IMG/VR virus record: IMGVR_UViG_3300007352_000001
Location: 1-64,000 of that record
Length of the DNA: 64,000 bases
Strand: one strand, 5' to 3'
Position numbers and translations under genes: made by a program. The stretch's first letter is position 1; the number at the start of each line of letters is the position of its first letter. Positions 8,758 to 53,707 of the stretch are shown here, one piece after another. The notes beneath the pieces are model-generated. The model saw only the letters and a program-made list of their open reading frames with translations. It ran no database searches and was not told where the DNA came from.

Positions 8758-9126
8758 ATGAGATTCACGCTCCCGCCGCCGAAGCTCCTCGCCGAGATCA
8801 ACGGGCATCTCGAAGACTTCTTCACGGAGCACGACGAGGCCGATCTCACCAGCGCGCTCGATCTGCTCTGTGCGTTCTACGACGTCGCCCACCCCCGCGT
8901 ACTGTGGCGCCGCACGATCGACCGTGGGGTCACCCTCGGGATCACCTACCACCACAACACGCTCCACCTGATTCGCCCCGCGGTGTGGGTCACGCGCAAG
9001 CGCGACAACACCGAAGAGGAGTGGATCGAGACGTTCTGGCACGAGTGGTACCACGTCGTGCACTACGTCGATGACGAGACCAAGGCGGACCAGTTCGCGC
9101 GCCTCTGCATGGAGGTCGCCGCCTGA
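8758..9126 (+). CDS. minimal zincin-like HExxH metalloprotein
   Basis: ETFWHEWYH followed by E..ADQFA. Confidence 0.65.
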   Translation: MRFTLPPPKLLAEINGHLEDFFTEHDEADLTSALDLLCAFYDVAHPRVLWRRTIDRGVTLGITYHHNTLHLIRPAVWVTRKRDNTEEEWIETFWHEWYHVVHYVDDETKADQFARLCMEVAA

Positions 9127-10562
9127 TGCCACAGGGAAAGTCCGAAGGGGTCGTCCAGTGCCGCAAGTGCGGCACCCACAAGAACCTCTGCACCGACCGC
9201 TCGAACCGCAGCGGCGTGCGCAGCATCTGCCGCAAGTGTCAGCGGCAGGAGTGCAAAGACGGCCGCGCCCGTCGACGCTCGACCAACGGCGGCACGATCA
9301 AGCCGGCGTACCACGCCGCGATCGACGCCGATCAGATCACGCAAGAGACCGAGGGCAACTACGAAGTCGTCACCACGGTCTCGAAGACGATCCGCACCGT
9401 TCCGCAGCTGCTCGACGCGATCAAGGTGCCGCGCAGTGCGTTGCTGGTGAACGGCAGCAGCGAGTGGGTCGTTGACGGCAAGGAAGCGCGCAAGTGGGAT
9501 CAGGGCGTCATCATCGACGGCGTCCACCGCGTGGTCGAACTCTGGTACGTGAAGGTGAATCTCAAGCGCCGCCGTGCGGTGCCGATCGCCTTCGAGCCCA
9601 TCCGGCCGCTGACGCTCACCATCCACATCCCGAGCCGCGCCGACACAGCCCCGCCCGCGAGCTTGCGCCGCGCGCTCATCGTCCCGGACTCCCAGCACGG
9701 CTTCGCCCGTGACGTGCAGGGGCGGCTCGATCCGCTCCACGATCGCCAGGCCTGGGCCTGCATGGTCGAGATCGCCCGCTACGCGAAGCCCAACCGCGTC
9801 GTGTTCCTGGGCGACATGCTCGACATGACCGACTGGTCCGAGAAGTTCATCACCGGACCGGAGTTTCGCTCGGTCACTCAGCCGGCGCTGGTCGAGCTGG
9901 CGTGGAACTTCGCGCAGGTGAAGGCGACGCTCGTGCCGTACAAGCGCGAGCAACCGCATGGGGACTGGCTCGCCGGCAATCACGAGTGGCGCATGGTGAA
10001 GGCGTTCTACCAGCACCTGCGCGCGGCAGCGGAACTCCGGCCGATCGACGAGCCCGACGGGCCACCGATCTATTCCTTCGAGCGGTTGATGAAGCTGACT
10101 GAGAAGTTCGGCATCACCTACCACGACAAGTACCCCCACGCCGAGCTGTGGCTGAACGACAACCTGCGCATTTCCCACGGGGAGCGGGTGCGTGGCGAGT
10201 CCGGCGAGACCGCCAAGTCGGTCATCCGCGATGCGCGCTGCTCGGAGATCTACGGCCACGTGCACCGCATCGAGCAGATCCACAAGACGGTGCACCCGCG
10301 CCATGGCGCGGTCAGCTACGTCGCGTTCTGCCCTGGTACGCTCGCTCGCATCGACGGGACGGTGCCCGCGGCAACCAGCCGGGTGAACTGGCAGCAAGGG
10401 TTCGCGATCGTCGACTACGAGCCTGGCAACGGCCGCTTCTGGATCCAGTCCGTGCCGATCCACCCCGGCGGGTGGGCGATCTACGACGGCAAGGTGTTCC
10501 GCGGGAAGTTCAGCATGGCGGCGCTGCGTGCCGGCACGCCAGGATGGCGATGGGCAGCCTAG
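9126..10562 (+). CDS. calcineurin-like metallophosphoesterase with N-terminal zinc finger
   Basis: PDSQHG, LGDMLD, AGNHE, SHG, GHVHR motifs; N-terminal CRKC...CRKC. Confidence 0.9.
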   Translation: MPQGKSEGVVQCRKCGTHKNLCTDRSNRSGVRSICRKCQRQECKDGRARRRSTNGGTIKPAYHAAIDADQITQETEGNYEVVTTVSKTIRTVPQLLDAIKVPRSALLVNGSSEWVVDGKEARKWDQGVIIDGVHRVVELWYVKVNLKRRRAVPIAFEPIRPLTLTIHIPSRADTAPPASLRRALIVPDSQHGFARDVQGRLDPLHDRQAWACMVEIARYAKPNRVVFLGDMLDMTDWSEKFITGPEFRSVTQPALVELAWNFAQVKATLVPYKREQPHGDWLAGNHEWRMVKAFYQHLRAAAELRPIDEPDGPPIYSFERLMKLTEKFGITYHDKYPHAELWLNDNLRISHGERVRGESGETAKSVIRDARCSEIYGHVHRIEQIHKTVHPRHGAVSYVAFCPGTLARIDGTVPAATSRVNWQQGFAIVDYEPGNGRFWIQSVPIHPGGWAIYDGKVFRGKFSMAALRAGTPGWRWAA

Positions 10563-17720: not shown

Positions 17721-18345
17721 GCGCACCCAGGGGCTGATGCCCGCCAAGCACCTGTCGGTTGTCGGCGGGGTCTACATCGGCAACGGGAAGTCGATCCCTG
17801 TGCGGCTGGTGGATTTCGACGGCGAGCGGCGTGAGCTGACGGTCGAGATCGTGGCGGACACCGACCACGAGATCAAACCGTTGAAGATGCTCTACATCGA
17901 CGGCCGCGCGTTCACGTACTTGCTGACGCAGCCGCACTTCCGGACCGACGGTGGTACGATTCGGTTCGTCTACCTCGAACACGTGGCCGGGACGTCGCTC
18001 ATCGACCAGCCGCGTAACTTCGCAGTGCAATACTGGCCCGCTCCGATTGCTGTCGCACAAGAGCTTGGGGTGCGCGGCACGCTCTACTGCGTTGCCGGCA
18101 CGCCACATCGCCAAGGGGGTACGTTGCCGCACAACGTGCACGACGAACACGAGGGCAAGCTCGAAGTCATGGGCTACGACCCGAGCCGCCAGATCACGCT
18201 CTACTTGAACAGCTCGCTGAACGTCTCGTGGCAATCACCCAGTGCCGCCCGTTTGTCCGCGTTGCTGCTGGACCGCCCGCAGCCTGGTCAGCTCGTGCTG
18301 CCGAGCACGCAGCTCCAGTACCAGCTCCCCATCGCCCATGAGTGA
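17692..18345 (+). CDS. hypothetical protein
   Basis: ORF with plausible composition; start uncertain. Confidence 0.55.
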   Translation: MSTRAQRRRRRTQGLMPAKHLSVVGGVYIGNGKSIPVRLVDFDGERRELTVEIVADTDHEIKPLKMLYIDGRAFTYLLTQPHFRTDGGTIRFVYLEHVAGTSLIDQPRNFAVQYWPAPIAVAQELGVRGTLYCVAGTPHRQGGTLPHNVHDEHEGKLEVMGYDPSRQITLYLNSSLNVSWQSPSAARLSALLLDRPQPGQLVLPSTQLQYQLPIAHE

Positions 18346-19180
18346 CGAGTACGACGACGTCGGCTTCGTGGCGCACCACACGCGGTTCCGGCACACCCCG
18401 AGTCTCGACCAGCACCGCACCCTTTTCCAATCGCTCCTCCGGCTCCCTGGCGTCGTGCCGTACCGGCAGAAGATGCAAGTCGGCCGCGATGAACAACACG
18501 GCTTGGGCGCCCTCGTGCAAGACCAGGCACGCCGCCGTGAGATCCTCGCGGAGATCCGGGCGATCGCAACTGACCACAAGGTCGGCATCGACCTCGTGCA
18601 GCGGCGCACCAGCGAGTACGTCGATCGCGTCTTGAAGGGCGAACTGCCCGGTCAGTACTCCGACGATCTCGCCGTGCAGAAGGCATGCGTCGGCTGCTCA
18701 GACATCGGCTACTTGGACGACGACGGGCTCTGCGCGAAGTGCATCGCGCGCGTGACCTACCACGTCGTCGACCACGAGACAGCCACCGACCGCTTCCACG
18801 TGGTGAATCAACTCTACGGCGTGCGTGTGTTCGCCTCGAACAACAAGGGCGAGGCCGACAGCGCGGCGCGTGACTGGACCGCCGGCCGGCGCGCGAAGGC
18901 CCGCCAGGGCATCTTCATGAACGCGGGCGAGGCGATCGACGCCGTCGCCCACGGGCAGCCGGTCCGCGGCGCCGCGAAGACGCTCACCAAGAAGACCTTC
19001 GTCCGCAATGACGTCGTCGAGTTCACTGATGGTGCGGGGATCCTGCAACGCGGAGTGGTCCTCCGTGCCCACCGTACGGTGCATGGGCTTGGGTATGTTG
19101 TCCAGGTCACCCGGACGCAGCACAATGTCTGGGTGGTGGCCGCGGATCTCCGCAAAGCGAACCCCGAGCACTGGCAATGA
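18338..19180 (+). CDS. multi-module hypothetical protein (zinc ribbon, internal helical tag, C-terminal SH3-like barrel)
   Basis: CVGC...CAKC; MNAGEAIDAVAHGQPV at 18917. Confidence 0.65.
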   Translation: MSDEYDDVGFVAHHTRFRHTPSLDQHRTLFQSLLRLPGVVPYRQKMQVGRDEQHGLGALVQDQARRREILAEIRAIATDHKVGIDLVQRRTSEYVDRVLKGELPGQYSDDLAVQKACVGCSDIGYLDDDGLCAKCIARVTYHVVDHETATDRFHVVNQLYGVRVFASNNKGEADSAARDWTAGRRAKARQGIFMNAGEAIDAVAHGQPVRGAAKTLTKKTFVRNDVVEFTDGAGILQRGVVLRAHRTVHGLGYVVQVTRTQHNVWVVAADLRKANPEHWQ

Positions 19181-19184
19181 TCCG

Positions 19185-19421
19185 GTGACCACGGAGCTGA
19201 AACGGAGCCGGTGCACGGTGCCTACCACCATCCACACCACCGCAGGCCAGTGCCACTTCGTCATGATCCCTGGCGGGTTCGTCGCCATCGTCCCTGGCCG
19301 GGTGGGTTGGTACTCGGTGCACTCTCGACAGTGCCCGGAGCCCACCGTGGATGAGCCGAACCGAGCCAGCCGATTCGCCCACGTCGACCGCGTTAGTCGC
19401 CGACTCGCCCGCAAGCGCTGA
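19185..19421 (+). CDS. small hypothetical protein with GRVGWYS motif
   Basis: GTG just after the upstream stop; motif at 19296. Confidence 0.4.
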   Translation: MTTELKRSRCTVPTTIHTTAGQCHFVMIPGGFVAIVPGRVGWYSVHSRQCPEPTVDEPNRASRFAHVDRVSRRLARKR

Positions 19422-19533
19422 CGCCACGTTGTACTGTCCTGCGTGCGGGCATCGCGGAGAGGCCCGTCGATGCAAACTCGTGTGCGCCAACCCCGCGTGC
19501 AGCGTGCAGATCATCCTGACGTGCGCGGACTGA
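19351..19533 (+). CDS. small zinc-ribbon protein
   Basis: CPACG...CKLVC....C......C. Confidence 0.5.
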   Translation: MSRTEPADSPTSTALVADSPASADATLYCPACGHRGEARRCKLVCANPACSVQIILTCAD

Positions 19534-19652: not shown

Positions 19653-20243
19653 ATGAACCTGGCATTGGACGAGGGGCGTCAGCCCGGCCACTTCAACACC
19701 GCCAAGCGCAACGCGCGCAATGACGCGACGCGCCGCGGCCACAACCTCGGCACGTGGAACAACACGGGCTTCGGTGCGCACGTGGCGGTGTGCAAGGACT
19801 GCAACGCACAGGTGCGCGTGCGGATCACGCCCGACCAGAAGGAATCGTGGATCGAGTCGAAGCCGGCCCTGGCGACCGATTGGTCCGAGGGACAGCCAGA
19901 AGGTGGCGTCTGCCGCACGCGCAAGCCGACCTACGGCGGTGGTGGCCGCGGTGGAATGGCCGAGCACGTCATCGACGCCGTCATGAACGGCGCGGGGGTG
20001 CTCGAAGCGATCAAGGACTTCCGCACGGCCTATCCAGACGGTACCAAGGTGCCGATGACCGCCGACGATCACCGGCCGATCGGCCAGCGTCCACGTGGGC
20101 TCAACTACTCGCACCGCAAAGTGTTGAAGCAGATGCGGGCCACGGGCCGCACCGCGTACGACGACCTGCAGGCGCAGCAGAACCCTCGCCCGCATCTTCC
20201 GTGCGGAGGCTGCGGTCACCCGAACTGCGGCTACTGCGCCTGA
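19653..20243 (+). CDS. hypothetical protein with zinc ribbons and internal helical tag
   Basis: CKDC, CGGC..PNCGYC; MAEHVIDAVMNGAGV at 19956. Confidence 0.65.
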   Translation: MNLALDEGRQPGHFNTAKRNARNDATRRGHNLGTWNNTGFGAHVAVCKDCNAQVRVRITPDQKESWIESKPALATDWSEGQPEGGVCRTRKPTYGGGGRGGMAEHVIDAVMNGAGVLEAIKDFRTAYPDGTKVPMTADDHRPIGQRPRGLNYSHRKVLKQMRATGRTAYDDLQAQQNPRPHLPCGGCGHPNCGYCA

Positions 20244-20249
20244 AGGAGG

Positions 20250-20639
20250 TTGATCGTGCCGGTCAGTGACATCCGCAAGAATCACAAGGGGCACTTCTTC
20301 GATCGCGACACGATGCGGTTCTTCAAGAGCCGCGCCCATGACCGTTCGTACGAAGGCCCCGGTGGGCACTACTTCGTGACCAGCGAGCAGCAGCCGCGCT
20401 GGGGCGGTGGCCACCAGCGCCGGCACTACAAGGTGCGCAGCTACGACTCTGCGGCTGACCGCATCACCTCCGCGGGCGAGTTCCTCGGCTACAAGACCGC
20501 GCGCCGCGCGCATCGCGCTGCCTCGAAGCTCGCACTCACGCCGCGCAAGATGAAAGTCGCCGAGGCAGCCACTGCGTTGCTTGCCGGGACGCCTGTCGCC
20601 GAAGCGATTACGGCGATCGTCGAGGGCGAGCGCGAGTAG
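20250..20639 (+). CDS. conserved phage protein (HFF...TMRFF.SR type) with C-terminal helical tag
   Basis: AAGGAGG RBS; HFFDRDTMRFFKSR...YFVTSE recalled as a widespread uncharacterised phage domain. Confidence 0.7.
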   Translation: MIVPVSDIRKNHKGHFFDRDTMRFFKSRAHDRSYEGPGGHYFVTSEQQPRWGGGHQRRHYKVRSYDSAADRITSAGEFLGYKTARRAHRAASKLALTPRKMKVAEAATALLAGTPVAEAITAIVEGERE

Positions 20640-20640
20640 C

Positions 20641-22344
20641 ATGTCACTCTTTCGTAGGGCGGGGCACGCTGCCTGGATCGCTCCGTCCGGCGAAGTGCAC
20701 CCGCTCGACACCAACGAAGGCCACTGGCTCTGGGTGGAGAAGAATCGGCACCGGATTCCGGAGTCGCTCCATCGCCCGACCGCGGAGCAGACCGGCTACA
20801 ACATGATCCAGCGCGGCTGGATTCGTCAGGCAGCGCCGAACGCGTACCACATCGGCCGGCCGCAGGACGTCCGCCGCGTGCGCGATCACGTGCTCATGCA
20901 CCATCCGAAGCTGAAGACGGTCTTCGTCGATCAGATGGGCGGGCCGTCACGTGAGGTGGATGTGCACGAAGATCTCGAAGGGCTTGCTCAAGCGCGTGCC
21001 GCCACGCACCCGGCGCCGAGCGAGGCGCAGAAGCGCGCGGGCAACTACGCCAAGGGCAAGGTGCAGCTGCACGGGATGACGATCGCCATCGAGAACGCCA
21101 GGGGCTCGCTGCGCACCGGCGTCTCGAAGGCCGGAGTGCGCTGGTCGAACCGGATGAAGCACGACTACGGCTACATCCTGGGCACGCTCGGCAAGGACAA
21201 GGATCATCTCGACGCGTTCGTCGGACCGCACCACGAGTCGGAGCTGGTGCACGTCATCGACCAGTACCGTCCCGACAGCGGCGCCTTCGACGAGCACAAG
21301 ATCGTCTTCGGGGCGCGGTCAACAGCTGAGGCCAAGGACATCTACCACTCCAACTACGCGAAGGGGTGGAAAGGGCTGGGACACATCACGCCGATGCACG
21401 TCACCGAGTTCAAGGCCTGGTTGGCGCACCACAACACGATGAGCCCGATGCACGCACAGCGCCGCGCGCCGCACGACACCTTCCGCACGGTGCGCGAGGC
21501 GATCGCCGCCGTCGCGGACGGTGTCGCCCCGGCCGACGTCATCGAGTCAGGTTGGGACGATGCGGTCTATCTGCGTGGCCGGCACGGCGCGTGGCTGAGC
21601 CCGCGCGGGAACTTCCACCCGCTCCAGCGTGGCGAGCTACACAAGGACTGGGTGCACTCGCACGCCAAAGAGCTGGGCGTGAAGGTCCCCAAGCGTCCGG
21701 GCCGCACCGCACCAGGCATGGGCGACACCACCGAGGTCGAGCATGATCTTCTGCGCTCGGGCTGGGTGAAGAAGTCCGACGCCACGACGTACGAGGCGCA
21801 CTCGGCTGAGCCGCGCGTGCTGCGCAGTATCCGGCAGCACATGCGCGAGTATCACCCCGACGAGTCGCACTTCGCGTTGCAGGTCGGCAAGGTCGGGGCC
21901 GGCGCCACCGGTCACTACCTGCCGGTCTGGGAAGGCCTCGACGAGGGCGACGTCATCCGTCCGCCGGTGGCCTGGTGGAACGATCCAGTGCGCATCAAGT
22001 TGCCGATGAAGGGACAGGTGGTGCCGATCAGTCACGGCGTGCATGGCCGGACGCCCCGGCCGACCGCGACCCCCATTGACCCCGTTGCGTTCGAGAAGGG
22101 CGTTGCCAAGCTCCGCGGAGTCCGTGCGGCGCTCGACCACACTGAGCTGAGCCACCGCTCGAAGCTGCCGTGCCCGCAGTGCAAGGGGCCGACCTCCATG
22201 CGCGTGACGCGCCGCGCCACGATCCACACGTGCAAAGACGGGTGGTGCAAGCACGAGTTCACCAAGCCGCTCGCGGAAGAGCGCGAGCGCGATGCTGTCG
22301 CCGAGTGGCATCGTCGCCTCAAGCAAGCTCTCGGACAGGAGTGA
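20641..22344 (+). CDS. polyvalent-type multidomain protein: W-x-x-P-x-G domain, inorganic-pyrophosphatase-like domain, helical tag, second W-x-x-P-x-G domain, zinc ribbon
   Basis: PSEAQKRAGNYAKG...IEN..GS.R.G...DYGYI.GT.G.D.DHLD.F...FDEHK matches the polyvalent-protein InPase domain. Confidence 0.8.
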   Translation: MSLFRRAGHAAWIAPSGEVHPLDTNEGHWLWVEKNRHRIPESLHRPTAEQTGYNMIQRGWIRQAAPNAYHIGRPQDVRRVRDHVLMHHPKLKTVFVDQMGGPSREVDVHEDLEGLAQARAATHPAPSEAQKRAGNYAKGKVQLHGMTIAIENARGSLRTGVSKAGVRWSNRMKHDYGYILGTLGKDKDHLDAFVGPHHESELVHVIDQYRPDSGAFDEHKIVFGARSTAEAKDIYHSNYAKGWKGLGHITPMHVTEFKAWLAHHNTMSPMHAQRRAPHDTFRTVREAIAAVADGVAPADVIESGWDDAVYLRGRHGAWLSPRGNFHPLQRGELHKDWVHSHAKELGVKVPKRPGRTAPGMGDTTEVEHDLLRSGWVKKSDATTYEAHSAEPRVLRSIRQHMREYHPDESHFALQVGKVGAGATGHYLPVWEGLDEGDVIRPPVAWWNDPVRIKLPMKGQVVPISHGVHGRTPRPTATPIDPVAFEKGVAKLRGVRAALDHTELSHRSKLPCPQCKGPTSMRVTRRATIHTCKDGWCKHEFTKPLAEERERDAVAEWHRRLKQALGQE

Positions 22345-22346
22345 TC

Positions 22347-23822
22347 GTGAACCCAGGAGTGCGCCTCGCCATCGACTTCGCCACGCAAGGCACGCCGGTG
22401 AGCGTGCTCGCCGAGGCGCTCATCAACGAGATCACCAAGGGCCATCTGAGCGCCCTCATGGCGCACGACCCGCACGCCCTCATCTACCACCCGCAGATCG
22501 AGCAGGGCGGGGAGCGCGAGACGATCGACTGGCACACGCGCAAGAAGCGCAACCCCGGCGAGGACGTCACCCGCTACACTGACGATCTCCGTCCCGAGGT
22601 CCGTGCGCAGTTCCGCTCGCCGAAGGAAGGGGCGTACCGCAAGACCGACCTGACGGTGGTGAAGGCGCACATGGGCCACCCGCTCTACTCGCGTTCCGCG
22701 GTGGCCCCCAACCTCCACGGCAAGCCGAGCGGCCGGCCGGCGCCGTCGATCTCCGGGGAGCACCTCGACTTGATGACGCACGCGGCCAAGGGCCAGGCGG
22801 AATCGCGTCACTGGTACGAGCACATCGCGCCACACGTGCAGCGGATCTTCGACTCTCCGCACTACAAGGACTCACACATGATCATGGGCCTGCTGGCGGC
22901 GTACTCGCCGCAGACCCACCCGCACCCGAACGTCCACAAGGCACTGCGTGGCTGGCGCGATCTGATCCAGGGCAAGCCGCTGATCGGCTCGCACTCGGAC
23001 AACACCAACGCGCTGCGCGCCGCGCATGGGATGCACCTCTCGGGGCCGAAGGTCCACTGGTACAACCGCAACATGCAGCACGGCATCACGCCGACGGCGA
23101 CGACGCCGACCGGGGATCCGATCGGCTCGGTCGACCACCCGACCAACGATCGGCACATGAAGTACGCCTTCCTGCGCGACTACGACGACGAGACGGTGCA
23201 CCCAGAGCAGCACGTCGCGATCACGCAGGCGACGCGGCACGTCGCCAACAAGCTCGGCTGGGGCCAGCACCAGGCGCAGGCCGCGGTGTGGGCGCACGAC
23301 ATCCGTACCACGGGCCTGAACGATCCGTCGTTCCACACGCCGGGCTCGCCGTTCAAGAAGCTCTCGCAGCGCTACGGGGGCTACCTGCCGGTTGTCGACG
23401 ACAAGAAGCCGATCCAGGACTACGGCCAGTTCTTCCGCGAGAACGAGCACGCGCTGCGCGGCATGAAGCACGAGATGGATCAGTACCGCATGTACCACCC
23501 GAACTACCGTGAGCACGCTGGCAAGGGGACGCCGTTCCTCTTCCACCCGGCAGGTATTCGCGGCGCGGCGATCAAGTACGGCCACGAAGTCTCGGCCGAG
23601 CACTTGTCGAACGCGCGCGAGGGGAAAGCGGTCCTCACCGATCTGAAGAATCGCGACATCACCCGCACCGATCCCAAGTCGGGATGGGAGATCGGCCCGA
23701 CTTCCGGCGCCTTCACCGGTCGGAAGAAGGATGTCGTGCGGCCGAACGTGTCGTTCGTGCACCCGACGCAGAAGCGCGTCACCCGCAAGGACCTCAAGAA
23801 CCTGGAACCGGCACCGTTCTGA
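22347..23822 (+). CDS. His-rich protein with N-terminal helical tag and HhH-glycosylase-like (DUF7178-like) domain
   Basis: HWYE, LLAAYSPQ, LSGPKV, DRHM, AQAAVW motifs in order. Confidence 0.6.
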   Translation: MNPGVRLAIDFATQGTPVSVLAEALINEITKGHLSALMAHDPHALIYHPQIEQGGERETIDWHTRKKRNPGEDVTRYTDDLRPEVRAQFRSPKEGAYRKTDLTVVKAHMGHPLYSRSAVAPNLHGKPSGRPAPSISGEHLDLMTHAAKGQAESRHWYEHIAPHVQRIFDSPHYKDSHMIMGLLAAYSPQTHPHPNVHKALRGWRDLIQGKPLIGSHSDNTNALRAAHGMHLSGPKVHWYNRNMQHGITPTATTPTGDPIGSVDHPTNDRHMKYAFLRDYDDETVHPEQHVAITQATRHVANKLGWGQHQAQAAVWAHDIRTTGLNDPSFHTPGSPFKKLSQRYGGYLPVVDDKKPIQDYGQFFRENEHALRGMKHEMDQYRMYHPNYREHAGKGTPFLFHPAGIRGAAIKYGHEVSAEHLSNAREGKAVLTDLKNRDITRTDPKSGWEIGPTSGAFTGRKKDVVRPNVSFVHPTQKRVTRKDLKNLEPAPF

Positions 23823-24427: not shown

Positions 24428-24862
24428 ATGCCCGCCGCTGACGATCTCCAGGACTCACTCTCCACGACCAAGCGGTTGATGGAAGAGTTCGGGTTCACCA
24501 AAGAAGAGGTCCGGCAGCACTTCGAGAACGTGCAGGCGGACATGCAGCGCATGGGTGAGTCGAACGGGGAGCTTGCGGAGGCCGCTCGCTACCTCGTCGA
24601 CGAACTGCGGAAGGCGTACCCCAAGCGGGTCGGCGACTTCTCGCAGCACGGCCCCGCGTTGCCGGACGACCAGTTGCGGAAGGGGCGAGGGGATGGCGGG
24701 GCGGTACGACTGGTACAGCATTCCGAAGACGATCATTTACCACAACAACTGCCCGGACGGATTCACCGCCGCCTGGGTCGCTCACTCGAAGTTTGGCGAC
24801 CACGACGTCCAGTTCCACCCAGCCAACTTCGGCGAACCGCCGCCCGACGTCGCTGGCCATGA
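24428..24862 (+). CDS. hypothetical protein carrying the RVGDFSQHGPA tag
   Basis: Helical N-terminus; motif at about 24626; 3' part overlaps the DHH gene. Confidence 0.55.
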   Translation: MPAADDLQDSLSTTKRLMEEFGFTKEEVRQHFENVQADMQRMGESNGELAEAARYLVDELRKAYPKRVGDFSQHGPALPDDQLRKGRGDGGAVRLVQHSEDDHLPQQLPGRIHRRLGRSLEVWRPRRPVPPSQLRRTAARRRWP

Positions 24863-25520
24863 CGTCCTGATCGCGGACTTCAGCTACGCGCGCGACGTGC
24901 TCCAACTCTTGCACGGGCGCGCGAACTCGCTGCAGGTCCTCGATCACCACTTCAGCGCGGAGCAAGATCTGCGTGGCCTGCCGTTCTGTGTCTTCGACAT
25001 GGAGCGCAGTGGCGCGGGCCTCACCTGGGACACGCTCTTCCCGGACACGCCGCGGCCGTGGATCGTCGACTACATCGAAGATCACGACCTCTGGCGGTTC
25101 AAGCTGCCAGACTCCAGCGCCGTCCGTGGCTACCTCGGCAGCGTGCCGCGCACCTTCGAGGCCTACGACGCGCTGGTGCAGGTGCCACTCACCGAGGTGA
25201 TCGAGCACGGCCGCACGGTCGAGCGCTACGTCGCCAACCACGTCCGCGAGCTGGTCGACATGTTCGCCCGCCAGGTCGAGTTCGAGGGCATGCGCGTGTG
25301 GGCGATCAACCTGGGCGGACGCCTGGTGAGTGAGACCCTGCATGCGCTGAACGAGCGCTCGGCGGTGTCGGTGGCGTGGTGCCAGAAGCAAGACGGCAAG
25401 TACCTCTACTCGCTGCGGTCCAACGGAGACGTGGACGTGAGCGAACTCGCCCGCCACTACGGCGGCGGGGGCCACCGAACGGCTGCGGGCTTCCGCACAG
25501 ATCGGTGCCTCTGGCTGTAA
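24693..25520 (+). CDS. DHH/DHHA1 phosphoesterase
   Basis: YHNNCPDG, ADFS, LDHH, DHDLW, SLRS, GGGGHRTAAG. Confidence 0.93.
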   Translation: MAGRYDWYSIPKTIIYHNNCPDGFTAAWVAHSKFGDHDVQFHPANFGEPPPDVAGHDVLIADFSYARDVLQLLHGRANSLQVLDHHFSAEQDLRGLPFCVFDMERSGAGLTWDTLFPDTPRPWIVDYIEDHDLWRFKLPDSSAVRGYLGSVPRTFEAYDALVQVPLTEVIEHGRTVERYVANHVRELVDMFARQVEFEGMRVWAINLGGRLVSETLHALNERSAVSVAWCQKQDGKYLYSLRSNGDVDVSELARHYGGGGHRTAAGFRTDRCLWL

Positions 25521-25536: not shown

Positions 25537-25719
25537 ATGCCCACCACGCATGAGCTAGCCGACCAGCTGCTCGACGCCATCGACAACGGCATGCCCGTCG
25601 ACGAAGCGGTCGAGGCCGCGATCAACGAAGCGCCCGCCAAGGGTCCGCGTATGATCCGGTTCGGCACGAGCAAAGAGCGCCTCGGCGCTCGCCCGATCGC
25701 ACAAGCACGCCAGCAGTAA
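25537..25719 (+). CDS. small protein made mostly of the helical tag
   Basis: AAGGAG RBS; LLDAIDNGMPVDEAVEAAINE. Confidence 0.65.
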   Translation: MPTTHELADQLLDAIDNGMPVDEAVEAAINEAPAKGPRMIRFGTSKERLGARPIAQARQQ

Positions 25720-29439: not shown

Positions 29440-31660
29440 GTGAAAACGTCCCTACGTGGTTGCGCGCTCGCGCTCATGATCGTCGTCGCGCTGGCACAGG
29501 CTGCAGCAGGCGTGACGTACACCGTCACCAGCACCTGCGATACGGGCGACGCCTCTCCGGATGGGACGTGCAGTGACCCGTGCTGTCTGCGCGAATCCAT
29601 CGACGAGGTGAACGCTGGCAGTGGCGGCGACACCATCGCGTTCGCCATCCCCGGCGCCGGCCCGCACACCATCACGCTCGGCTCGGCCTTGCCGACGATC
29701 AGCAAGGCGAACACCGTCATTGACGGCACCACCCAGAGTGGGACGGTGTGCTGCACAGGCTGGGACTGTTCGGCCGCGGTGTGGAAGATCCGCATCGACG
29801 CGAACGGCGGGGACTTCAACATCATCGAGTTCACCCTGGGTGCGACCGACGCGATCGTGCGCGGTCTGGAACTGATCAACGACGACCCAGACGCAGAATA
29901 CGGTCTGACGTTCGACACGGTCGAGTCGGTCACCTGCAACAGCATCCACGGCGGGCGCGGCGGCATTGCGATGTCGAACGGCGGGACCATCGGTGGCGTT
30001 GGGGTCAACGACGCGAACGTCGTCTACGACACCGGGGAGTTTGGCCTCACCTCTCGCGGCACCACCGGCACGAACGTCATCACCGGCAACGTCGTCTGCT
30101 TGGCGCCCGACGGGGAGACCGACGGCGGGCCGATGAACTACGGCATCTACGCTGAAGACTCCGTCGACTTGGTGATCACCAACAATCTCGCCGCCAGCTG
30201 TGATGTGGCCGGCATTCTCACTCGCAGCAGCGGGACGGTCGACACGGTAGTGACCGAGAACACGCTAGGGCCGACGCGCAGTGGCGCAACCACCCACTGC
30301 TTCGGATTCACGGTGATCGAGGACAACGGCACCGGCACCAGCCTGAGCGACAACACGCTCTGCCCACAAATCGGCTGCTGCAACGTGACCGGACTCGAAG
30401 AGTTCGACGTGACCTGCGTCGACCACACCCTCGGCTCAGGCAATCCCTACTCTCAAGCGGACTGTCTGGAGATTGTGGGTGGGGTTGGCGGGGTGCCGAC
30501 GAGTTTCAACCCTGACGCTGTCTGCGACCCGGATGTGAGTGGTACCTGTCCGGCAGCGGTACCGACCGCCACGCCGACTGTCACGGCGACCGCCACCGCC
30601 ACGGCAACGCCCACGTCTGGAGGCCTGACCGACGTCGTTGTCGTGCCGGGCTCGCAAGAATGCCCATCACCGTACGAGACGTTGCTCGCCGGCCACGTGC
30701 CGTACGCGAGCATCGCCCAGCAGTTGCGCGGCGCGTGCCTGCAGCAGCCGCGCAACGAGTTCACGATCGGCCCGTGCGCGGTCTGTGGCAGCGCGCAGCA
30801 CGTCGCCATGGTGCTCGGACGCCAGACGTGCCCTGCCGGGTCCGCGACAGTGTCCGGCTCGATCTACACTTGGGCGGGCCTCTCGGATCAGTTGTGTTGG
30901 CCGACCCCGCCCGACGAAGTCGCGACGGCCGCGGGATCCTGTGTGCTGTGTCAGACGGACGACCCAGTGTTCTCGGTGCACGGGGCGGCAACCTGCCCCC
31001 AGCCCATTCACCGCCTACACCACCGGCAACGTCTACCAGTGGCCGTTGAAGCACCAGGCTGACGGGCTCTGCTGGACGTCCGCTCCGCAAGGGCTCGCCA
31101 CCACGGTCGGCCCGTGCGCCCTGTGCACCAACAGCGTGCGGCCGTTCACTGTGTACGGCACCAGCGCGTGCCCCGACGGCACAACGCAGGTCTACGCGGG
31201 AGGCATCTACCAGTACGGCCTCGGCCCGAAGGTCGATCGCGAGTGCTGGAAGAACCCACCGTCGGCGAGCGCCCTGCAGGTCGGCCCGTGTGCGCGGTGC
31301 GTGGGCAACGGCAAGGAAGTCACCATCAACGGACAGTACGGCTGCCCTGGTGGGTGGACGAAGCTCGCCGACGGGCAAGCCTACTCGTGGAGTCCTGCCC
31401 AGCGGCCGTCAGACCAGTGCTGGCAGCGCGCCCCGACGAACGTCCTGTCACAGCCGGTCGGCCCGTGCTCGCTCTGCCAGCCGTCGACCGACGTCGTCTC
31501 GCTGCTCGGCGCGACGCGCTGCCCCGACACCGCCATCACTACGATCTCCGGCAACGTGTACTTCTGGCCCGGAGGACTCGTCGACAACGCCTGCTGGGTA
31601 CAGCCGGCGTACGACACGACGATGTCCTACATGCCCTGCCAGCTGTGCGTGCTGCCGTAG
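29440..31660 (+). pseudogene. secreted CSLREA-domain/beta-helix protein with six Cys-rich repeats, interrupted by a +1 frameshift
   Basis: Signal peptide, YTVTS..D..D..PDGTC...CCLRESI, PT linker; C5 run at 30996-31000 splits repeat 3. Confidence 0.7.
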
Positions 31661-31988: not shown

Positions 31989-32402
31989 ATGAGTGGAGCG
32001 ACTTCGTTCGCCCAGCTGGTCGCGGCCCACATGGACGGGATGCACCCGACGTCTGTCGTCGAGAGCATGCTGGGTCCGGATCGCACGGACGACTTCACCA
32101 GTGACGACGTGCGAGCCCGCGAGTTCACCCGCATCGCCTCGCAAGCAGCGTCGGCCTTCCCGTACATCGGGCCGGACTGGATCGGCACGATCGCGCAGGC
32201 AGTCCGCCAGGCTGATGCGCAGGGCATGCAGGAACTCGTCCGCATGTCTACCCAGAACCGTGATCAGTATGCGGGCACCGCCCGCATCGACTCTGACGGG
32301 TCGTTCGCGCTCTGGGACGCGATTCTCAAGGGGCTGCTCGCGGTGCCGACCACCCAGCTGCCGCCGCCCGCCCCGCCGCTGAACACGGCCCCGCTTCCGT
32401 AA
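31989..32402 (+). CDS. hypothetical protein with N-terminal helical tag
   Basis: AGGAGG RBS; FAQLVAAHMDGMHPTSVVES. Confidence 0.7.
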   Translation: MSGATSFAQLVAAHMDGMHPTSVVESMLGPDRTDDFTSDDVRAREFTRIASQAASAFPYIGPDWIGTIAQAVRQADAQGMQELVRMSTQNRDQYAGTARIDSDGSFALWDAILKGLLAVPTTQLPPPAPPLNTAPLP

Positions 32403-33564: not shown

Positions 33565-34377
33565 ATGCCTGGTCCGGATTTCGCCGTCGACGGCTTGTCT
33601 CCCACTCAAGTGCCGGGGCTGGGTCTCCAGCCCCGGTCACTCGGGAGCTGCAACAAGTGCCGCTACTACGGCGAGCCGGCGTTCGACGATCGCTGCCCTC
33701 AGTGCGGAGATCCTATGGAACTGAAGACGCCTGCAAATCCTGCTGCCGACACGCGTACCAACGCGCCAGGCAGTCAGCCGCAGGCGCCCGCGGCGCTCAC
33801 CTCGTCCGCCGACCAATCGACCATGGAATCCATGGTCGAGGGGGCTGACGGACTGGAGTGCGCCTTCTGCGGGTTGGTCATGGGCCTCGAAGAGGAGTGC
33901 TGCCCGCGGTGCGGGCTCACGGTGGAAAACACCGAGAGTTCTTTCGCAGCCAGTGCCTCCTCGCCGAAGTCCTACCAGCCTGGCGGGCTCCTGCCTTCCG
34001 AAGATCATCCCATGAACTGCGCAGCCTGCGGCATGCCCGTGGGTGAGTCGCTCTGCAACAACTGCGGCTTCCGTGCAGTCAGCGAAGACGAGGACCTCTC
34101 GTGGTCCGACATCGTCTCGCCGGCTGTCCACGCGAACTCCCGCTTCGCGGTCTCGGCCGCGATGCAGTGCGACGAGCAGGGACTGAAGCAGCTGGCCAAC
34201 TCGCTCGTCTGGGGCGAGGACGGTCAGCGGCAGCTCGACCCGGAACAGCTGGCCGGCGAGCCGCCCAAGTGGCTCCCAGCACAGCACGAGTCGCTCTGGC
34301 GCGATCTCGTCACGGACCACTCGTACACCACGTACCGTGACGCGGTCTTCGCGCTCAAGCGCGAACTCCTGGCCTGA
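33565..34377 (+). CDS. multi-zinc-ribbon protein
   Basis: Three CxxC...CxxCG ribbons. Confidence 0.65.
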   Translation: MPGPDFAVDGLSPTQVPGLGLQPRSLGSCNKCRYYGEPAFDDRCPQCGDPMELKTPANPAADTRTNAPGSQPQAPAALTSSADQSTMESMVEGADGLECAFCGLVMGLEEECCPRCGLTVENTESSFAASASSPKSYQPGGLLPSEDHPMNCAACGMPVGESLCNNCGFRAVSEDEDLSWSDIVSPAVHANSRFAVSAAMQCDEQGLKQLANSLVWGEDGQRQLDPEQLAGEPPKWLPAQHESLWRDLVTDHSYTTYRDAVFALKRELLA

Positions 34378-34683: not shown

Positions 34684-36294
34684 ATGTCGGATCCCGTTAC
34701 CTCCCCGCTCCTGCTGGAGGAGACGCGCATCTTCACGCCCCAGATCGTGGAGCGCGCAACGCCCGGTGGTCGTCTGCGACTGCAAGGCATCTACCAGCTC
34801 GGCGAGGTCGTCAACCAGAACAAGCGTCGGTACCCGAACCCGCTCTGGGATCGGTTGCTGGGGGAAGGTTCCGCGTTTCAGAACCGCGTCCGCGCTCGCC
34901 GTGTACTCGGCGAACTCGGGCACCCCAAGGACGGCAAGACGCTCCTCGAACGCGTCTCGCACCTGATCACCAAGACCTGGATCGACCCCAACGGGCGGCG
35001 TGACTGTCTCGCCTGCGAGCAGAGCCTCAACCCCGGCCACTACCACGTCATGGCCGAGGAAGAGGTGCTCAACACGCCGCACGGGAAGATCCTGGGCGAA
35101 CTCTACGAAGCTCAGGTCGAAACCGGCGTTTCCTCGCGTGGCCGCGGCACGCTCGTCCCGATGGGCGAGTACTCCAACGTCAACGACGACTACGCCATGG
35201 AGACCTTTGACCACGTGCTCGATCCGAGCACGCCTGGTGCGATGCCGCGCGTCGTGTCCGAGAACGTCGTCGGCGTCATCTCCCGCTTCGCCAACTGCGA
35301 CGCCACCCCTGCGGAACTGCAGGGGTACCGTTCCATCCTGGCTGAGGTGACCGAATCGGCCGCGCCCGAGATCCGTTCCAACGCCCACGCGGTGATGGAA
35401 GCGATCGAGGTGCGTCTTGCCAACGCGAGTCGTGGACAGGTGCAGTGCTCGGTGCCGGCGTCGGCACCCCTGCTGCACATGTCCGACAGTGATTCTCGCG
35501 TCGAGTCCCCTCTCGCCGCAACCCCAACCCTGGAGGCACGCATGACCATCACCAAGGACCTGCCCGAGGTCCGTGCGATTGTCGCCGAGGCCGTCCGCGA
35601 GCACGAGGCATCGCTCCGCACGCAGTTTGACACCGCCATGTCCGAGATGGTCGCGACGGTGGAGAGCCTGCAGCAGGAGCTGCTCGCGTCGCAGCAGCGC
35701 AATGAGGCTGCTGACCTCGTCGGCAATGAGCTGGTCTCCCAGCTCAAGGAAACGAATCTGAAGCTCACGGCGTACTCGACCGCGAACAGCGGTGGGCATG
35801 ACGTGCTGCAGAAGTTCGACACCGCCAAGGGCGTGATCGAGGAACTCATCGAGCACGTCCGCAGCCTGCGCTACGCCGAGGCCCGCGCCGATGCGGCCGA
35901 GCGTCTCCTCTCCGAGGTGGTCGCTCGCACGCAGCGCGAGCATCTGATGGCGCACGTCGACCGCCTGCTCCAGGTGGTCCCCGAAGAGCACGTCGGCCGC
36001 GTGAAGCCGTTCCTCACCGAGGCGAGCAGCATCGCCGAGGCGAACCGTCGCTTCTCCACCGTCACCGCCGCGCTCATCACCGAGGCGCCGGAGACCGAAC
36101 AGCCGGCCGCGGTGCGTACCGACGGCGCACTCCCGCCGACCGCGGGACACCACGCCGCCGCCCTCACCGAGTCGACCACGCTCGTCGGCACTCCTACCCA
36201 GGGGACGCAGGCCGGGCAGCAGGTCAACGAGAGCGTGAACATCACCCGCGCGATGGTGCGCCGGCTGTCCGGCCGCACCGCCGTCGGCGCGTAA
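34684..36294 (+). CDS. gp21: T4 gp21-type prohead protease fused to a scaffold-like coiled coil
   Basis: NQNKRRYP, GELGHP, LNTPHGKI, GVSSRGRG, FDHVLDPST; coiled-coil C-terminal half; directly upstream of the capsid gene. Confidence 0.9.
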   Translation: MSDPVTSPLLLEETRIFTPQIVERATPGGRLRLQGIYQLGEVVNQNKRRYPNPLWDRLLGEGSAFQNRVRARRVLGELGHPKDGKTLLERVSHLITKTWIDPNGRRDCLACEQSLNPGHYHVMAEEEVLNTPHGKILGELYEAQVETGVSSRGRGTLVPMGEYSNVNDDYAMETFDHVLDPSTPGAMPRVVSENVVGVISRFANCDATPAELQGYRSILAEVTESAAPEIRSNAHAVMEAIEVRLANASRGQVQCSVPASAPLLHMSDSDSRVESPLAATPTLEARMTITKDLPEVRAIVAEAVREHEASLRTQFDTAMSEMVATVESLQQELLASQQRNEAADLVGNELVSQLKETNLKLTAYSTANSGGHDVLQKFDTAKGVIEELIEHVRSLRYAEARADAAERLLSEVVARTQREHLMAHVDRLLQVVPEEHVGRVKPFLTEASSIAEANRRFSTVTAALITEAPETEQPAAVRTDGALPPTAGHHAAALTESTTLVGTPTQGTQAGQQVNESVNITRAMVRRLSGRTAVGA

Positions 36295-36333: not shown

Positions 36334-37860
36334 ATGATCACTGCCAATCTGGTGGAACAGACGAGTGGTCGTGGCCTGAGCGACAACTTCCTGTCGCTGG
36401 GTCGCGTCCTCTCCGAGGAGCGCTGGGCCGACTACTGCAACGACCCCGAGATCCCCATCGCAGAAGACGCGACCCGCTACGGTCTCGCGTGCATGCTGGA
36501 GAATCTCGATCGCTTCCTCGGTCAACTCGACGAGACCACGCGCGCGGTCGCGATCGGCGACTTCCAGAAGTACGCCTTCCCCCTCGTCCGCGCCATCTTC
36601 CCTGAACTCGTCGCGAACAGCCTGGTGTCGGTGCAGCCGATGCTCGGCCCCACGAGCCTGATCTTCTACCTGGACTTCGTCTACGGGACGAACAAGGGCT
36701 CGGTGCGTCGCGGTGACACCGCCTTCTCGGCGGTGGCGCGCGGCCCGAACAACCCATCGTACACCTCGCCGAACGTCGACGAGGAGCAGGTCGCGACTGG
36801 CGACGGCACCACGGTGGCGTTCACCGCGAACATCTCCTTCACCCCGATCGTTCCGTCCTCGATCGTCATCACCGACGGCATCCAGGTCGTGACCGACAAC
36901 GGGGCGGGCGGTGTGACCGGCGACGCGTCGGCCGGCTCGGTCAACTACGCCAACGGGTCGCTGGCCGTCACCTTCAGCTCGGCGCCGTCGTCGGGCACCC
37001 CGATCACCGTGTCGTACACGTACGACATGGAAGCCAACCCCCTCCTGCCGGAGATGGACCTGGTGCTGCAGAGCACCCCGGTCATGGCCCGGCCGCGCAA
37101 GCTCAAGACCAAGTGGTCGCTGGAGGCGGCGTTCAACCTCCGCTCGCTGCATGGTCTGGAGGCTGAGGTCGAGTTGACTTCGGCCGTCGGCAGCGAGATC
37201 CGCTTCGAGATCGACCGCGAGGTCATTCTCGATCTGCAGAAGCTCGCGGGCGCGGGCTCGGTGTTCTGGAACAAGGACCTGCCGCAGGGCGTGTCCTTCA
37301 CCGAGCAGAAGCTGTCGATCATCGACACCTTCGTCACCGCCTCGAACCTCATCCACAAGACGACTGGTCGCGGCACCGCCACCTGGATCCTCGGTGGCGA
37401 GGGCGTGGCCAACGTCATCGAGACTCTGCCCGGCTTCGTGCCGACGCCGGGTCTCCCGAGCGGTCTCGTCAAGGGCGTGTACCGCGCGGGCCGTCTGAAC
37501 GGGCGCTGGGACTTCTTCAAGGACCCGTTCTACACGGACAACTTCTTCATGATGGGCTACAAGGGCATGAGCTTCCTGGAAGCCGGCTACGTGTACGCCC
37601 CGTACATCCCGCTCTACACCACGCCGACGATCGTCCTGGACGACTTCATCGCGCGCAAGGGTCTCGCCACGCAGTACGGCAAGAAGGCGGTGAACCCGCT
37701 CTTCTACGTCACCGGTGAGGTCGACCGCGGTCTCGCTCTGGAGACCAAGGCTGGTGTCGCCGCGGGCACCATCTCGTCGAGCGGTCAGGCCGTCCTGACC
37801 CACGGTTCGGCGAAGGAAGACCTCGGCCTGGCAACGGGCCGCGGCGTCTTCGGCATCTGA
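36334..37860 (+). CDS. gp23: T4 gp23-type major capsid protein
   Basis: LVSVQPMLGPTSLIF, RKLKTKWSLEAA, EIRFEIDREVI, AGYVYAPYIPL, KGLATQYG. Confidence 0.96.
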   Translation: MITANLVEQTSGRGLSDNFLSLGRVLSEERWADYCNDPEIPIAEDATRYGLACMLENLDRFLGQLDETTRAVAIGDFQKYAFPLVRAIFPELVANSLVSVQPMLGPTSLIFYLDFVYGTNKGSVRRGDTAFSAVARGPNNPSYTSPNVDEEQVATGDGTTVAFTANISFTPIVPSSIVITDGIQVVTDNGAGGVTGDASAGSVNYANGSLAVTFSSAPSSGTPITVSYTYDMEANPLLPEMDLVLQSTPVMARPRKLKTKWSLEAAFNLRSLHGLEAEVELTSAVGSEIRFEIDREVILDLQKLAGAGSVFWNKDLPQGVSFTEQKLSIIDTFVTASNLIHKTTGRGTATWILGGEGVANVIETLPGFVPTPGLPSGLVKGVYRAGRLNGRWDFFKDPFYTDNFFMMGYKGMSFLEAGYVYAPYIPLYTTPTIVLDDFIARKGLATQYGKKAVNPLFYVTGEVDRGLALETKAGVAAGTISSSGQAVLTHGSAKEDLGLATGRGVFGI

Positions 37861-42506: not shown

Positions 42507-42809
42507 ATGCCAACTACGGTTCCGCAAGCCATCCAAGCGGTTTTGGACGGACATTCCACAAAAAGTCTGGTGGAAGCCCTCCTCGAAGGCCGCAAAATCA
42601 CCCGGTGGTGGCAGGCGCATGCTGGGGACCTCGTGACCGACATCACGATGGGACAACCGGCCGGCGTCGGGCGCGTGAAGCGCCAAGACAAGAATGCCCG
42701 CGTGGAAGTCGAGTGGCTGTCTCACCCGCACTACAAGGGCAGGACGTTCACGCACACCCAAGGGGAACTGCGGAAGCTGCGCAAGCCTGGGGAAGGGAGC
42801 CAGCAATGA
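42507..42809 (+). CDS. helical tag plus SH3-like domain protein
   Basis: QAIQAVLDGHSTKSLVEALLE, then AGDLV...GRV...VEVEW. Confidence 0.7.
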   Translation: MPTTVPQAIQAVLDGHSTKSLVEALLEGRKITRWWQAHAGDLVTDITMGQPAGVGRVKRQDKNARVEVEWLSHPHYKGRTFTHTQGELRKLRKPGEGSQQ

Positions 42810-52966: not shown

Positions 52967-53199
52967 CCGACGACTTCGACGACGTCCCGGAGTTGAACAG
53001 CCTCCCGAAGCTCGACATCGAGTTCGCCCCGCCGGTGAAGCGCCGCTCGCGGCGACTCGACGGCTGGACGCACCAAGACAGACCCTTGCGTGTCGAGGGC
53101 GTCGCCCCACCAGCAATCGACCGGCGCAAGCCGTTGCGCCGCGGACAAGTCGGCTACGCCTCGCGTGGCCGGCGCAAGAGGACGATCGACGATGCGTGA
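52963..53199 (+). CDS. small protein with GQVGYASR motif; apparent ATA start
   Basis: In-frame ATA overlaps the upstream TAA (ATAA); fills the gap exactly. Confidence 0.4.
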   Translation: MTDDFDDVPELNSLPKLDIEFAPPVKRRSRRLDGWTHQDRPLRVEGVAPPAIDRRKPLRRGQVGYASRGRRKRTIDDA

Positions 53200-53707
53200 T
53201 GTCTCCGCGGCGATCAGTGCGATTCTCGACGGCGCGGCCGTGCCGGTGATCGCCGAGGCGATGATGCGCATGGGCATGGGTGCCCCGCCGCCGGTCAACA
53301 CCGGCGCCACCGGCGAAGCCGAGGATCGCAAGCACGCCGCGTGGATCGAGCCCAACGGCCGTACGCACGTGCTCGGCAGGGAAGAGATTCACGGCGACTG
53401 GGCCACGGCACGGCCCGAGATGTGGCCCAAGCGAGCGTACGCGGTCTACCGCGCCGCGGCCGGCCGCGGCGACGACACCTACCACGACGAATCGCGGCAA
53501 ATGAGCCGCATGATGAAGGCCGGGTGGGTGCGCAAGGCTGGCGCCGCCGCGTACCACGTCCACGCCCGCGAGCAGATCCCACGGGTCCTCGCCCACGTGC
53601 GCCGCTGGCATCCAGACGTCGACGAGTTCCATGTCGACGTCGGCTCGCCGAAGATCAAGACGACGGTCACGATGAACGCGCACACCGGGTGGCCGGTGCG
53701 GAGGTAG
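53192..53707 (+). CDS. helical tag plus W-x-x-P-x-G domain protein
   Basis: AAISAILDGAAVPVIAEA; AWIEPNG...H..W...AGWVRK. Confidence 0.7.
   Translation: MRDVSAAISAILDGAAVPVIAEAMMRMGMGAPPPVNTGATGEAEDRKHAAWIEPNGRTHVLGREEIHGDWATARPEMWPKRAYAVYRAAAGRGDDTYHDESRQMSRMMKAGWVRKAGAAAYHVHAREQIPRVLAHVRRWHPDVDEFHVDVGSPKIKTTVTMNAHTGWPVRR

Follow-up and report, generated by a model that had tools for sequence, protein, structure and literature searches.

A repeated domain outside Pfam and PHROGs flanks an inorganic pyrophosphatase domain in a polyvalent-style phage protein

Phage P1 encodes the Dar system, whose large multidomain anti-restriction proteins are loaded into the head and injected, and the jumbo phages phiKZ, 201phi2-1 and SPN3US have many paralogous head-associated proteins that a gp21-related protease cuts after Glu, at several sites per protein. 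T4 loads internal proteins that are otherwise unrelated by means of a short capsid targeting sequence at their N-termini, and gp21 cleaves this sequence off after Glu (PMC9026906). Inorganic pyrophosphatase (InPase) and 2H domains are phage-only domains of polyvalent proteins and are probably packaged, and the InPase domains of the polyvalent clade are marked by the absence of a beta-hairpin insert between strands 1 and 2 (PMC5512222). Polyvalent and capsid-injected effectors constitute a major and poorly charted share of the phage counter-defence arsenal. Here we describe a modular InPase protein of 567 residues, P0001, encoded in the first 64,000 nucleotides of IMG/VR virus record IMGVR_UViG_3300007352_000001 (positions 1 to 64,000, referred to as the window), together with a domain that occurs twice in P0001 and once in a second protein, P0002. 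The explanation we favour, with a probability of about 0.5, is that this repeat is a non-catalytic binding or carrier module of a cargo that is packaged, trimmed by a protease and injected; we infer the loading, cleavage and ligand of the repeat proteins.

P0001 is composed of repeat copy A, the InPase domain, a helix-turn-helix tag, repeat copy B, a linker, and a zinc ribbon with four Cys residues (coordinates of all features are in Table 1). A sequence-only reading of the window had proposed that one domain is present three times and that two of its copies flank an InPase-like domain, and this arrangement is borne out. The copies are 28–38% identical over about 110 residues, with BLASTP E-values of 4e-12 (A and B), 2e-11 (A and C), and 3e-16 (B and C), and a family hidden Markov model built from 127 segments covers each of them almost completely (HMM; Table 1); judged by sequence, the copies are homologous beyond chance. 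Scanning the 241-kb genome in all six frames with the profile yields four copies and no more, three of them inside the window. The fourth (copy D) is the N-terminal part of a 373-residue protein, P0004, at genome positions 239743–240861 (L001 7744–8862). All four match the profile end to end, including W-I-x-P-x-G, an invariant His, G-W-I-R-K, and H-P, and the motifs originally picked out by eye (A-W-I-x-P-x-G-x-x-H, H-x-x-W, G-W-V/I-R-K, and a helix followed by H-P) turn out to be the conserved core of the domain. Profile-profile tests for hidden repeat copies in neighbouring tagged proteins (a 493-residue protein, the DUF7447 protein, and the rest of P0004) found none. P0004 additionally has two further domains split by another tag, neither with a Pfam match, and the Cys ... 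His pattern of its middle domain calls a small thiol hydrolase to mind.

The predicted structure of the repeat is confident, and as modelled it is like no solved structure. Copy C was modelled with AlphaFold2 using an alignment of 127 family segments, giving a mean predicted local distance difference test score (pLDDT) of 94.6 and a predicted template modelling score (pTM) of 0.86. Its elements are, in order, a beta-hairpin, a short helix, a variable helical insert, a helix, a second beta-hairpin, a long helix, and a third beta-hairpin. Copy B, taken from a model of P0001 residues 275–567, has a pLDDT of about 95 and the same order of elements, with the variable insert present as a loop, and copy A presumably shares the fold, as its sequence aligns with profile positions 5–121 out of 128. 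The three segments had been suspected to share one fold, and we find the same topology in B and C and an end-to-end profile match for A rather than differing folds. In agreement with the sequence-only reading, which assigned the repeat no known function, no Pfam or PHROG family covers it and a Foldseek search of the PDB with the repeat model returned nothing at E≤1e-3. The best match in a BFVD structure search had an E-value of 0.026, and the best in a sequence-profile search of the PDB had an E-value of 0.11 (MntR). No structural match clearly above background was seen for PD-(D/E)XK or Hjc, gelsolin, Stay-Green, or winged-helix folds; the weak winged-helix echo (MntR, and AbiEi and PaaX in Pfam at E-values of 0.05–0.1) is not backed by any fold search and was rejected. 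The best Atlas row (template modelling score 0.55) is a half-viral cluster of 278-residue proteins that is probably the repeat family itself, and an ESM Atlas search from a poor model (pLDDT 0.47) gave unrelated rows only. Because the structure is predicted with confidence and has no solved relative, the domain is a clean target for structure determination and ligand screening.

The repeat is, from sequence searches, a real, widespread, and uncatalogued domain family of metagenomic phages, with a length of about 115 residues. A search of 1.84 billion representative proteins with a profile built from the four copies retrieved 152 proteins (clusters) at E≤1e-3; tightening the threshold to E≤1e-10 left 75. 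In 150 of the 152 we counted 361 copies; 85 of these proteins have two or more copies, with a maximum of ten; 30 members are single-domain proteins of 200 residues or fewer, and one 24-kb contig (L005) has 24 copies across six adjacent genes. Cluster records of ten members are all metagenomic, and one of them is named beyond 'hypothetical protein', with a name that reflects its fused enzyme domains and not the repeat. Neither the four copies nor 108 whole member proteins have a Pfam family over the repeat. The locus adds to the known repertoire a family that is abundant in metagenomic phages and lies outside both Pfam and PHROGs. A word-index search with P0002 found one homologue. The G+C content of member contigs ranges from 41% to 67%, and the family is therefore not bound to one host group. 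Two apparent relatives were discarded: the top BFVD match, Agrobacterium phage Atu_ph07, has nothing in its genome that the family profile finds, and a match to a Massilia plasmid that seemed to extend upstream of the InPase domain is low-complexity Ala-rich sequence and not the repeat. Orthologues of copies A, B, and C in related phages are located in otherwise-assembled proteins (P0015, P0020, P0031, P0016, and P0005), and the modules have therefore been shuffled at tag and domain junctions.

Conservation within the 127 segments, numbered according to the segment of P0002 from residue 40 to 166, bears on whether the repeat is an enzyme. Only H28 is invariant; W12, P15, G72, and W73 are conserved in more than 97% of segments, G17, W31, Y82, and P102 in more than 80%, R75 in 78%, and K76 in 72%, and position 35 is Asn or His in 74%. 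The helix followed by H-P, remarked upon in the sequence-only reading, corresponds to the end of helix alpha4 at H101-P102, with His in 93 and Pro in 107 of the segments. Many members have Tyr or Phe in place of H20, H96, and H101, and these positions therefore look like packing aromatics and not like sites of catalysis or metal binding; neither Asp nor Glu is conserved anywhere. Were the repeat a small enzyme, for instance a phosphotransferase or nuclease that works without metal through the invariant His, it could draw on H28, the conserved N35, R75, and K76, and the His-rich composition (7.7%); tRNA-splicing endonuclease, Hjc, and PD-(D/E)XK folds also show weak structural similarity to it, none of it significant. 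However, enzymes do not typically occur as up to ten tandem copies in one protein or as 24 copies spread over neighbouring genes, and as just one polar residue is invariant and no acidic one is conserved, we find an enzymatic role distinctly improbable. The conservation pattern, the composition (Trp 3.4%, median net charge 0), and the tandem arrays together speak for a module that binds or adapts more than for an enzyme, and we infer that the repeat is non-catalytic. The same features argue against plain electrostatic coating of DNA, and a generic DNA-coating role is disfavoured since the family is not basic.

What such a module might bind is suggested by its fusion partners. Among 108 scanned members, 15 have a 2H/Acb1-like phosphoesterase, six a GNAT domain, two DUF192, and two DUF5661, with rare or single occurrences of, among others, His_Phos_1, LMWPc, LigD phosphoesterase and ligase, HAD, MetallophosN, ART-PolyVal, SLT, TopoI, and PolyA polymerase domains. 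Some members are proteins of 1,500–5,000 residues with 2H, ART-PolyVal, LigD, and GNAT domains, and in a related phage (contig L010, 5222–6403) the repeat is fused to a histidine phosphatase. It is possible, if on the unlikely side, that the repeat binds nucleotides, or immune signals derived from them, either recruiting substrate to the fused phosphoesterases or, when arrayed, acting as a high-capacity sponge. The recurrence of InPase, 2H/Acb1-like, His_Phos_1, LMWPc, LigD, HAD, and MetallophosN domains in the same proteins, and of DHH and metallophosphoesterase genes nearby, is as this would predict; the conserved Trp, Trp, and Tyr together with the His and Arg-Lys are plausible as a stacking-plus-phosphate site, every array copy in the alignment retains the invariant His, and the 30 small stand-alone repeat proteins also fit. 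Nonetheless, many partners (GNAT, SLT, TopoI, and ART) are not phosphoesterases, and we see no structural or sequence likeness to any known nucleotide-binding fold or sponge. A more ambitious version, in which the repeat is a new-fold sensor or sponge for nucleotide-type immune signals or phosphorylated ligands, arrayed, coupled to phosphoesterases, and delivered from the capsid through a new helix-turn-helix tag, is a long shot; if true, these proteins would be a pre-packaged anti-signalling toolkit.

The case for a packaged cargo begins with the InPase domain, which is genuine, as had been claimed, and of the kind described in polyvalent proteins of phage type (PMC5512222); it scores 171.8 bits with PF18823 against a gathering cutoff of 26.8. 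As read from the sequence, the motifs E151, D186-K-D-H-L-D191, and D217-E-H-K are intact, and, in line with family I pyrophosphatases, E151, D186-x-D-x-x-D191, and D217-E-H-K are the presumed catalytic or metal-binding residues. PHROG matches to the InPase region fall inside giant proteins of phages whose annotations read minor head, virion structural, or DarB-like, and elsewhere the domain is fused to portal, MuF, S78 protease, DarA_N, ParB, RadC, NUDIX, and TopoI domains; one InPase protein, of Xanthomonas phage Rb1, is annotated 'internal head protein'. The repeat is absent from all 72 other InPase proteins found.

The earlier description of P0001 as polyvalent-style holds in part. Like the polyvalent proteins of Iyer et al. 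2017 (PMC5512222), it has a PF18823 InPase, here joined in one polypeptide to modules that may or may not count as effectors, and is encoded by a phage among virion genes, and the packaging and delivery with DNA proposed for those proteins may by analogy apply to it. Unlike them, it is short, with one recognisable enzyme in 567 residues beside its two repeat copies and zinc ribbon, and it has no MPTase or Zn-peptidase in cis: no peptidase family, including the processing peptidases MPTase and ZnMc, matches P0001 in Pfam at E≤1, and processing would have to be carried out in trans by a prohead protease. Its adaptor repeat and its tag also fall outside the catalogued LPD and Pfam families. The resemblance to the P1 Dar proteins DarB and DdrB is through the DarB-like PHROG match, which is limited to the InPase segment, and unlike the Dar proteins P0001 contains no helicase, methylase, or DarA_N domain. 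In kind, then, this is a known sort of protein (polyvalent or injected effector), with a repeat domain and a tag that are both recurrent and uncatalogued.

The tag is a segment of about 25 residues with the approximate consensus h-x-E-A-I-x-A-V-L-x-G-x-P-V-x-x-V-h-E. A tag HMM scores 22–30 bits in 11 plus-strand open reading frames (ORFs) of the genome, at 18.9, 19.96, 20.55, 21.5, 22.36, 25.56, 42.5, and 53.2 kb in the window and at genome positions 236.7, 239.4, and 240.4 kb, compared with a maximum of 7.8 bits for reversed sequences; a twelfth match (27 bits), on the minus strand at genome positions 125964–126284, is probably spurious. In the model of P0001 the tag forms a helix at residues 284–292, a turn, and a helix at 297–314, with pLDDT values of 54–84. 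Tags are found at N-termini, at C-termini, and between domains, and the motif is conserved in relatives: the closest InPase homologue, P0160, has a tag at the InPase junction followed by a different module, and in the distant members P0138 and P0142 the tag directly precedes the repeat. A tag had been said to lie directly before two of the three window copies, which is correct for copy B, whereas in P0002 a Pro/Gly-rich spacer of about 14 residues separates it from copy C. A 137-residue protein encoded upstream of the head genes (window 31989–32402) has a tag-like N-terminal sequence, A-Q-L-V-A-A-H-M-D-G-M-H-P-T-S-V-V-E-S, that is below the HMM threshold.

The genome has the machinery with which such a tag might function. 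It is, from its gene content, that of an uncultured jumbo myovirus with T4-type head machinery, because genes for a gp23-type capsid protein, a gp21-type protease, a head-tail adaptor, and a tail sheath are present. The S77 protease is a candidate for the processing enzyme acting in trans, and its C-terminal part is a coiled coil of about 300 residues resembling a scaffolding protein. In the capsid protein, L-D-E occupies residues 65–67, immediately N-terminal of the Gp23 core, which we take to be the expected maturation point, at the position where T4 gp23 is matured. As for T4 internal proteins and Alt (PMC9026906), there is a gp23-type capsid with an S77 protease, a helical peptide common to unrelated proteins, and hydrophobic-x-Glu at segment ends, an arrangement by which diverse cargo could enter the head; unlike the T4 signal, which is a 10-residue N-terminal propeptide, the tag is a helix-turn-helix of about 25 residues without sequence similarity to it. 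With phiKZ, 201phi2-1, and SPN3US the phage shares a jumbo genome, but it differs in its T4-like capsid gene set, tblastn searches of 50,697 GenBank phage records with P0002 and P0006 found no match, and the phage is known here from sequence alone.

We regard P0001 as a putative small polyvalent-style cargo, with a type-I-like InPase set between two repeat modules. By analogy with the T4 capsid targeting sequence, the tag would direct proteins into the prohead core, and the S77 protease would cut after Glu at the module borders V-H-E 110, V-I-E 302, V-W-E 431, and L-D-E 435. The fragments would leave the capsid together with the DNA, and the InPase might then remove pyrophosphate or a nucleotide-type signal early in infection. 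Since a gp21-type (S77) protease is encoded in the genome, cleavage after Glu is a reasonable idea. Three of the four repeat copies end in such a motif (V-H-E in A and D, V-W-E in B), V-I-E ends the tag, and L-D-E follows copy B. Of the cleavage sites proposed in the sequence-only reading, VIE (300–302) and LDE (433–435) conform to [LIV]-x-E and DLE does not, although V-H-E at 108–110, just before DLE, does fit.

Several observations weigh against this explanation. The motif [LIV]-x-E is not enriched in P0001, with nine occurrences against 6.0 ± 2.2 in shuffled sequences, and V-I-E 302 falls within a predicted helix. The tags are N-terminal, internal, and C-terminal, compared with the strictly N-terminal position of the T4 signal. 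With a median net charge of 0, the repeat is unlikely simply to coat DNA, and the invariant His with the conserved Arg-Lys and Asn could be an active site. Lastly, a distance of 14 kb separates the P0001 locus from the head genes. When the P0001 tag (residues 272–318) was modelled together with the protease-scaffold protein, the prediction (score 0.01, mark 0.34) spoke neither for nor against binding.

Some of these points would be accommodated if the proteins are not packaged, the tags being docking helices that join cytoplasmic phage proteins into a complex in which the repeat is a scaffold. The tags resemble two-helix hairpins that are able to bundle and may be terminal, at either end, or internal, and the tagged genes form separate clusters rather than lying between the portal and capsid genes. 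We nevertheless think this unlikely, as polyvalent proteins associated with virions typically contain InPase and 2H domains (PMC5512222) and InPase is fused elsewhere to portal, MuF, S78, and DarA_N domains. In addition, on a 57-kb phage contig the head gene module includes a seven-copy member of the repeat family that also has a 2H domain, and the tagged genes share their plus-strand block with the head and tail genes. The tag, in a phage with T4-type head machinery, is a testable candidate for a second and different capsid-loading signal, which would have a bearing on how jumbo-phage heads are filled with cargo and on the engineering of capsids for protein delivery.

The start of the P0001 gene is most likely the ATG at 20641, judging from the sequence. 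It is one base past the stop codon of the upstream gene and has GAGG upstream, and the G+C content at third codon positions (GC3) of the gene is 0.86. The Joint Genome Institute (JGI) gene call, P0008, starts at GTG 20695, 18 codons later, and drops the first beta-hairpin of copy A with its W-I-x-P-x-G motif; ATG 20641 restores copy A in full. His makes up 7.3% of P0001 and 7.8% of the product of the next gene, compared with a genome median of 2.6% (tagged proteins, window 20250–23822). The zinc ribbon has weak Pfam matches only (Lar and Zn-ribbon, E-values of 0.006–0.7) and is modelled as three short strands and a helix with low to moderate confidence. The pairing of a DUF7447 gene with a repeat gene is also seen on a related contig (L003).

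Table 1. Coordinates of P0001, P0002, their domains, and associated features in the window.
Feature	Coordinates	Strand	Basis
Upstream gene, DUF7447 protein, with C-terminal tag at 20550-20627	20250..20639	+	Pfam PF24239, E 3e-18
Gene for modular InPase protein P0001 (567 residues)	20641..22344	+	ORF and translation; start taken as ATG 20641
Repeat copy A, P0001 residues 4-112	20650..20976	+	Family HMM, E 2.3e-33, profile 5-121/128; BLASTP to B and C
InPase domain, P0001 residues 128-261	21022..21423	+	Pfam PF18823, E 8.6e-51, profile 1-134/135
Helix-turn-helix tag, P0001 residues 282-306, ends V-I-E	21484..21558	+	Tag HMM, 26 bits
Repeat copy B, P0001 residues 311-431, ends V-W-E, then G-L-D-E	21571..21933	+	Family HMM, E 2.4e-29; AlphaFold pLDDT ~95
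Putative four-Cys zinc ribbon (C511, C514, C531, C536), then C-terminal helix	22171..22248	+	Read from sequence
Further tags	18917-18991, 19956-20024, 22356-22430, 25555-25629, 42513-42590	+	Tag HMM, 23-29 bits; at least 8 tag-bearing genes in the window
Prohead protease S77, T4 gp21 type, fused to scaffold-like tail	34684..36294	+	PF03420, E 9.2e-13; PHROG 207, E 1.8e-33
T4 gp23-type major capsid protein	36334..37860	+	Pfam PF07068, E 4.8e-59, match from residue 75
Gene for P0002 (171 residues): N-terminal tag, spacer, copy C	53192..53707	+	ORF; AAGAGGA 9 nt before ATG
Tag, P0002 N-terminus	53195..53272	+	Tag HMM, 25.5 bits
Repeat copy C, P0002 residues 42-162	53315..53677	+	Family HMM, E 5.4e-33; AlphaFold pLDDT 94.6, pTM 0.86

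The genome is a single contig of 241,426 bp with about 66% G+C, of which the window is the first 64 kb, and JGI metagenome 3300007351 holds the same contig rotated by about 67 kb. The protease-scaffold, capsid, head-tail adaptor, and tail sheath genes form one common plus-strand block, within which the tagged genes also lie; the adaptor gene is downstream of the capsid gene, as is the sheath gene at 59314–61068 (PHROG 23, E 1.3e-89). Related contigs come from groundwater and other metagenomes. In the one sequencing run found, a wastewater 'RNA-Seq' metagenome, two 151-nt contigs have 0 and 2 differences from window 20828–21178, and this phage or a near twin is therefore present there at trace level; the run otherwise contains InPase fragments of other organisms and does not confirm the domain order of P0001.

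Phosphoesterases gather around the tagged genes, with a metallophosphoesterase at 9126–10562, the InPase at 21022–21423, and a DHH phosphoesterase at 24555–25520. CxxC zinc-ribbon motifs are unusually common in this block (18242–19180, 19351–19533, 22171–22248, and 33565–34377), and a 270-residue protein encoded directly upstream of the protease has four CxxC pairs. A repeat unit of some 55 residues, rich in Cys (GPC-x-x-C ... CP-x-G ... Y-x-W ... CW-x-x-PP), is located at window 29440–31660, where it passes near position 31,000 from an ORF in frame 0 (29440–31062) into one in frame 1 (30638–31660), and there is therefore a frameshift, either real or an assembly error. The frame 0 ORF has a signal peptide and a beta-helix-like region, and the locus probably encodes a receptor-binding or fibre protein.

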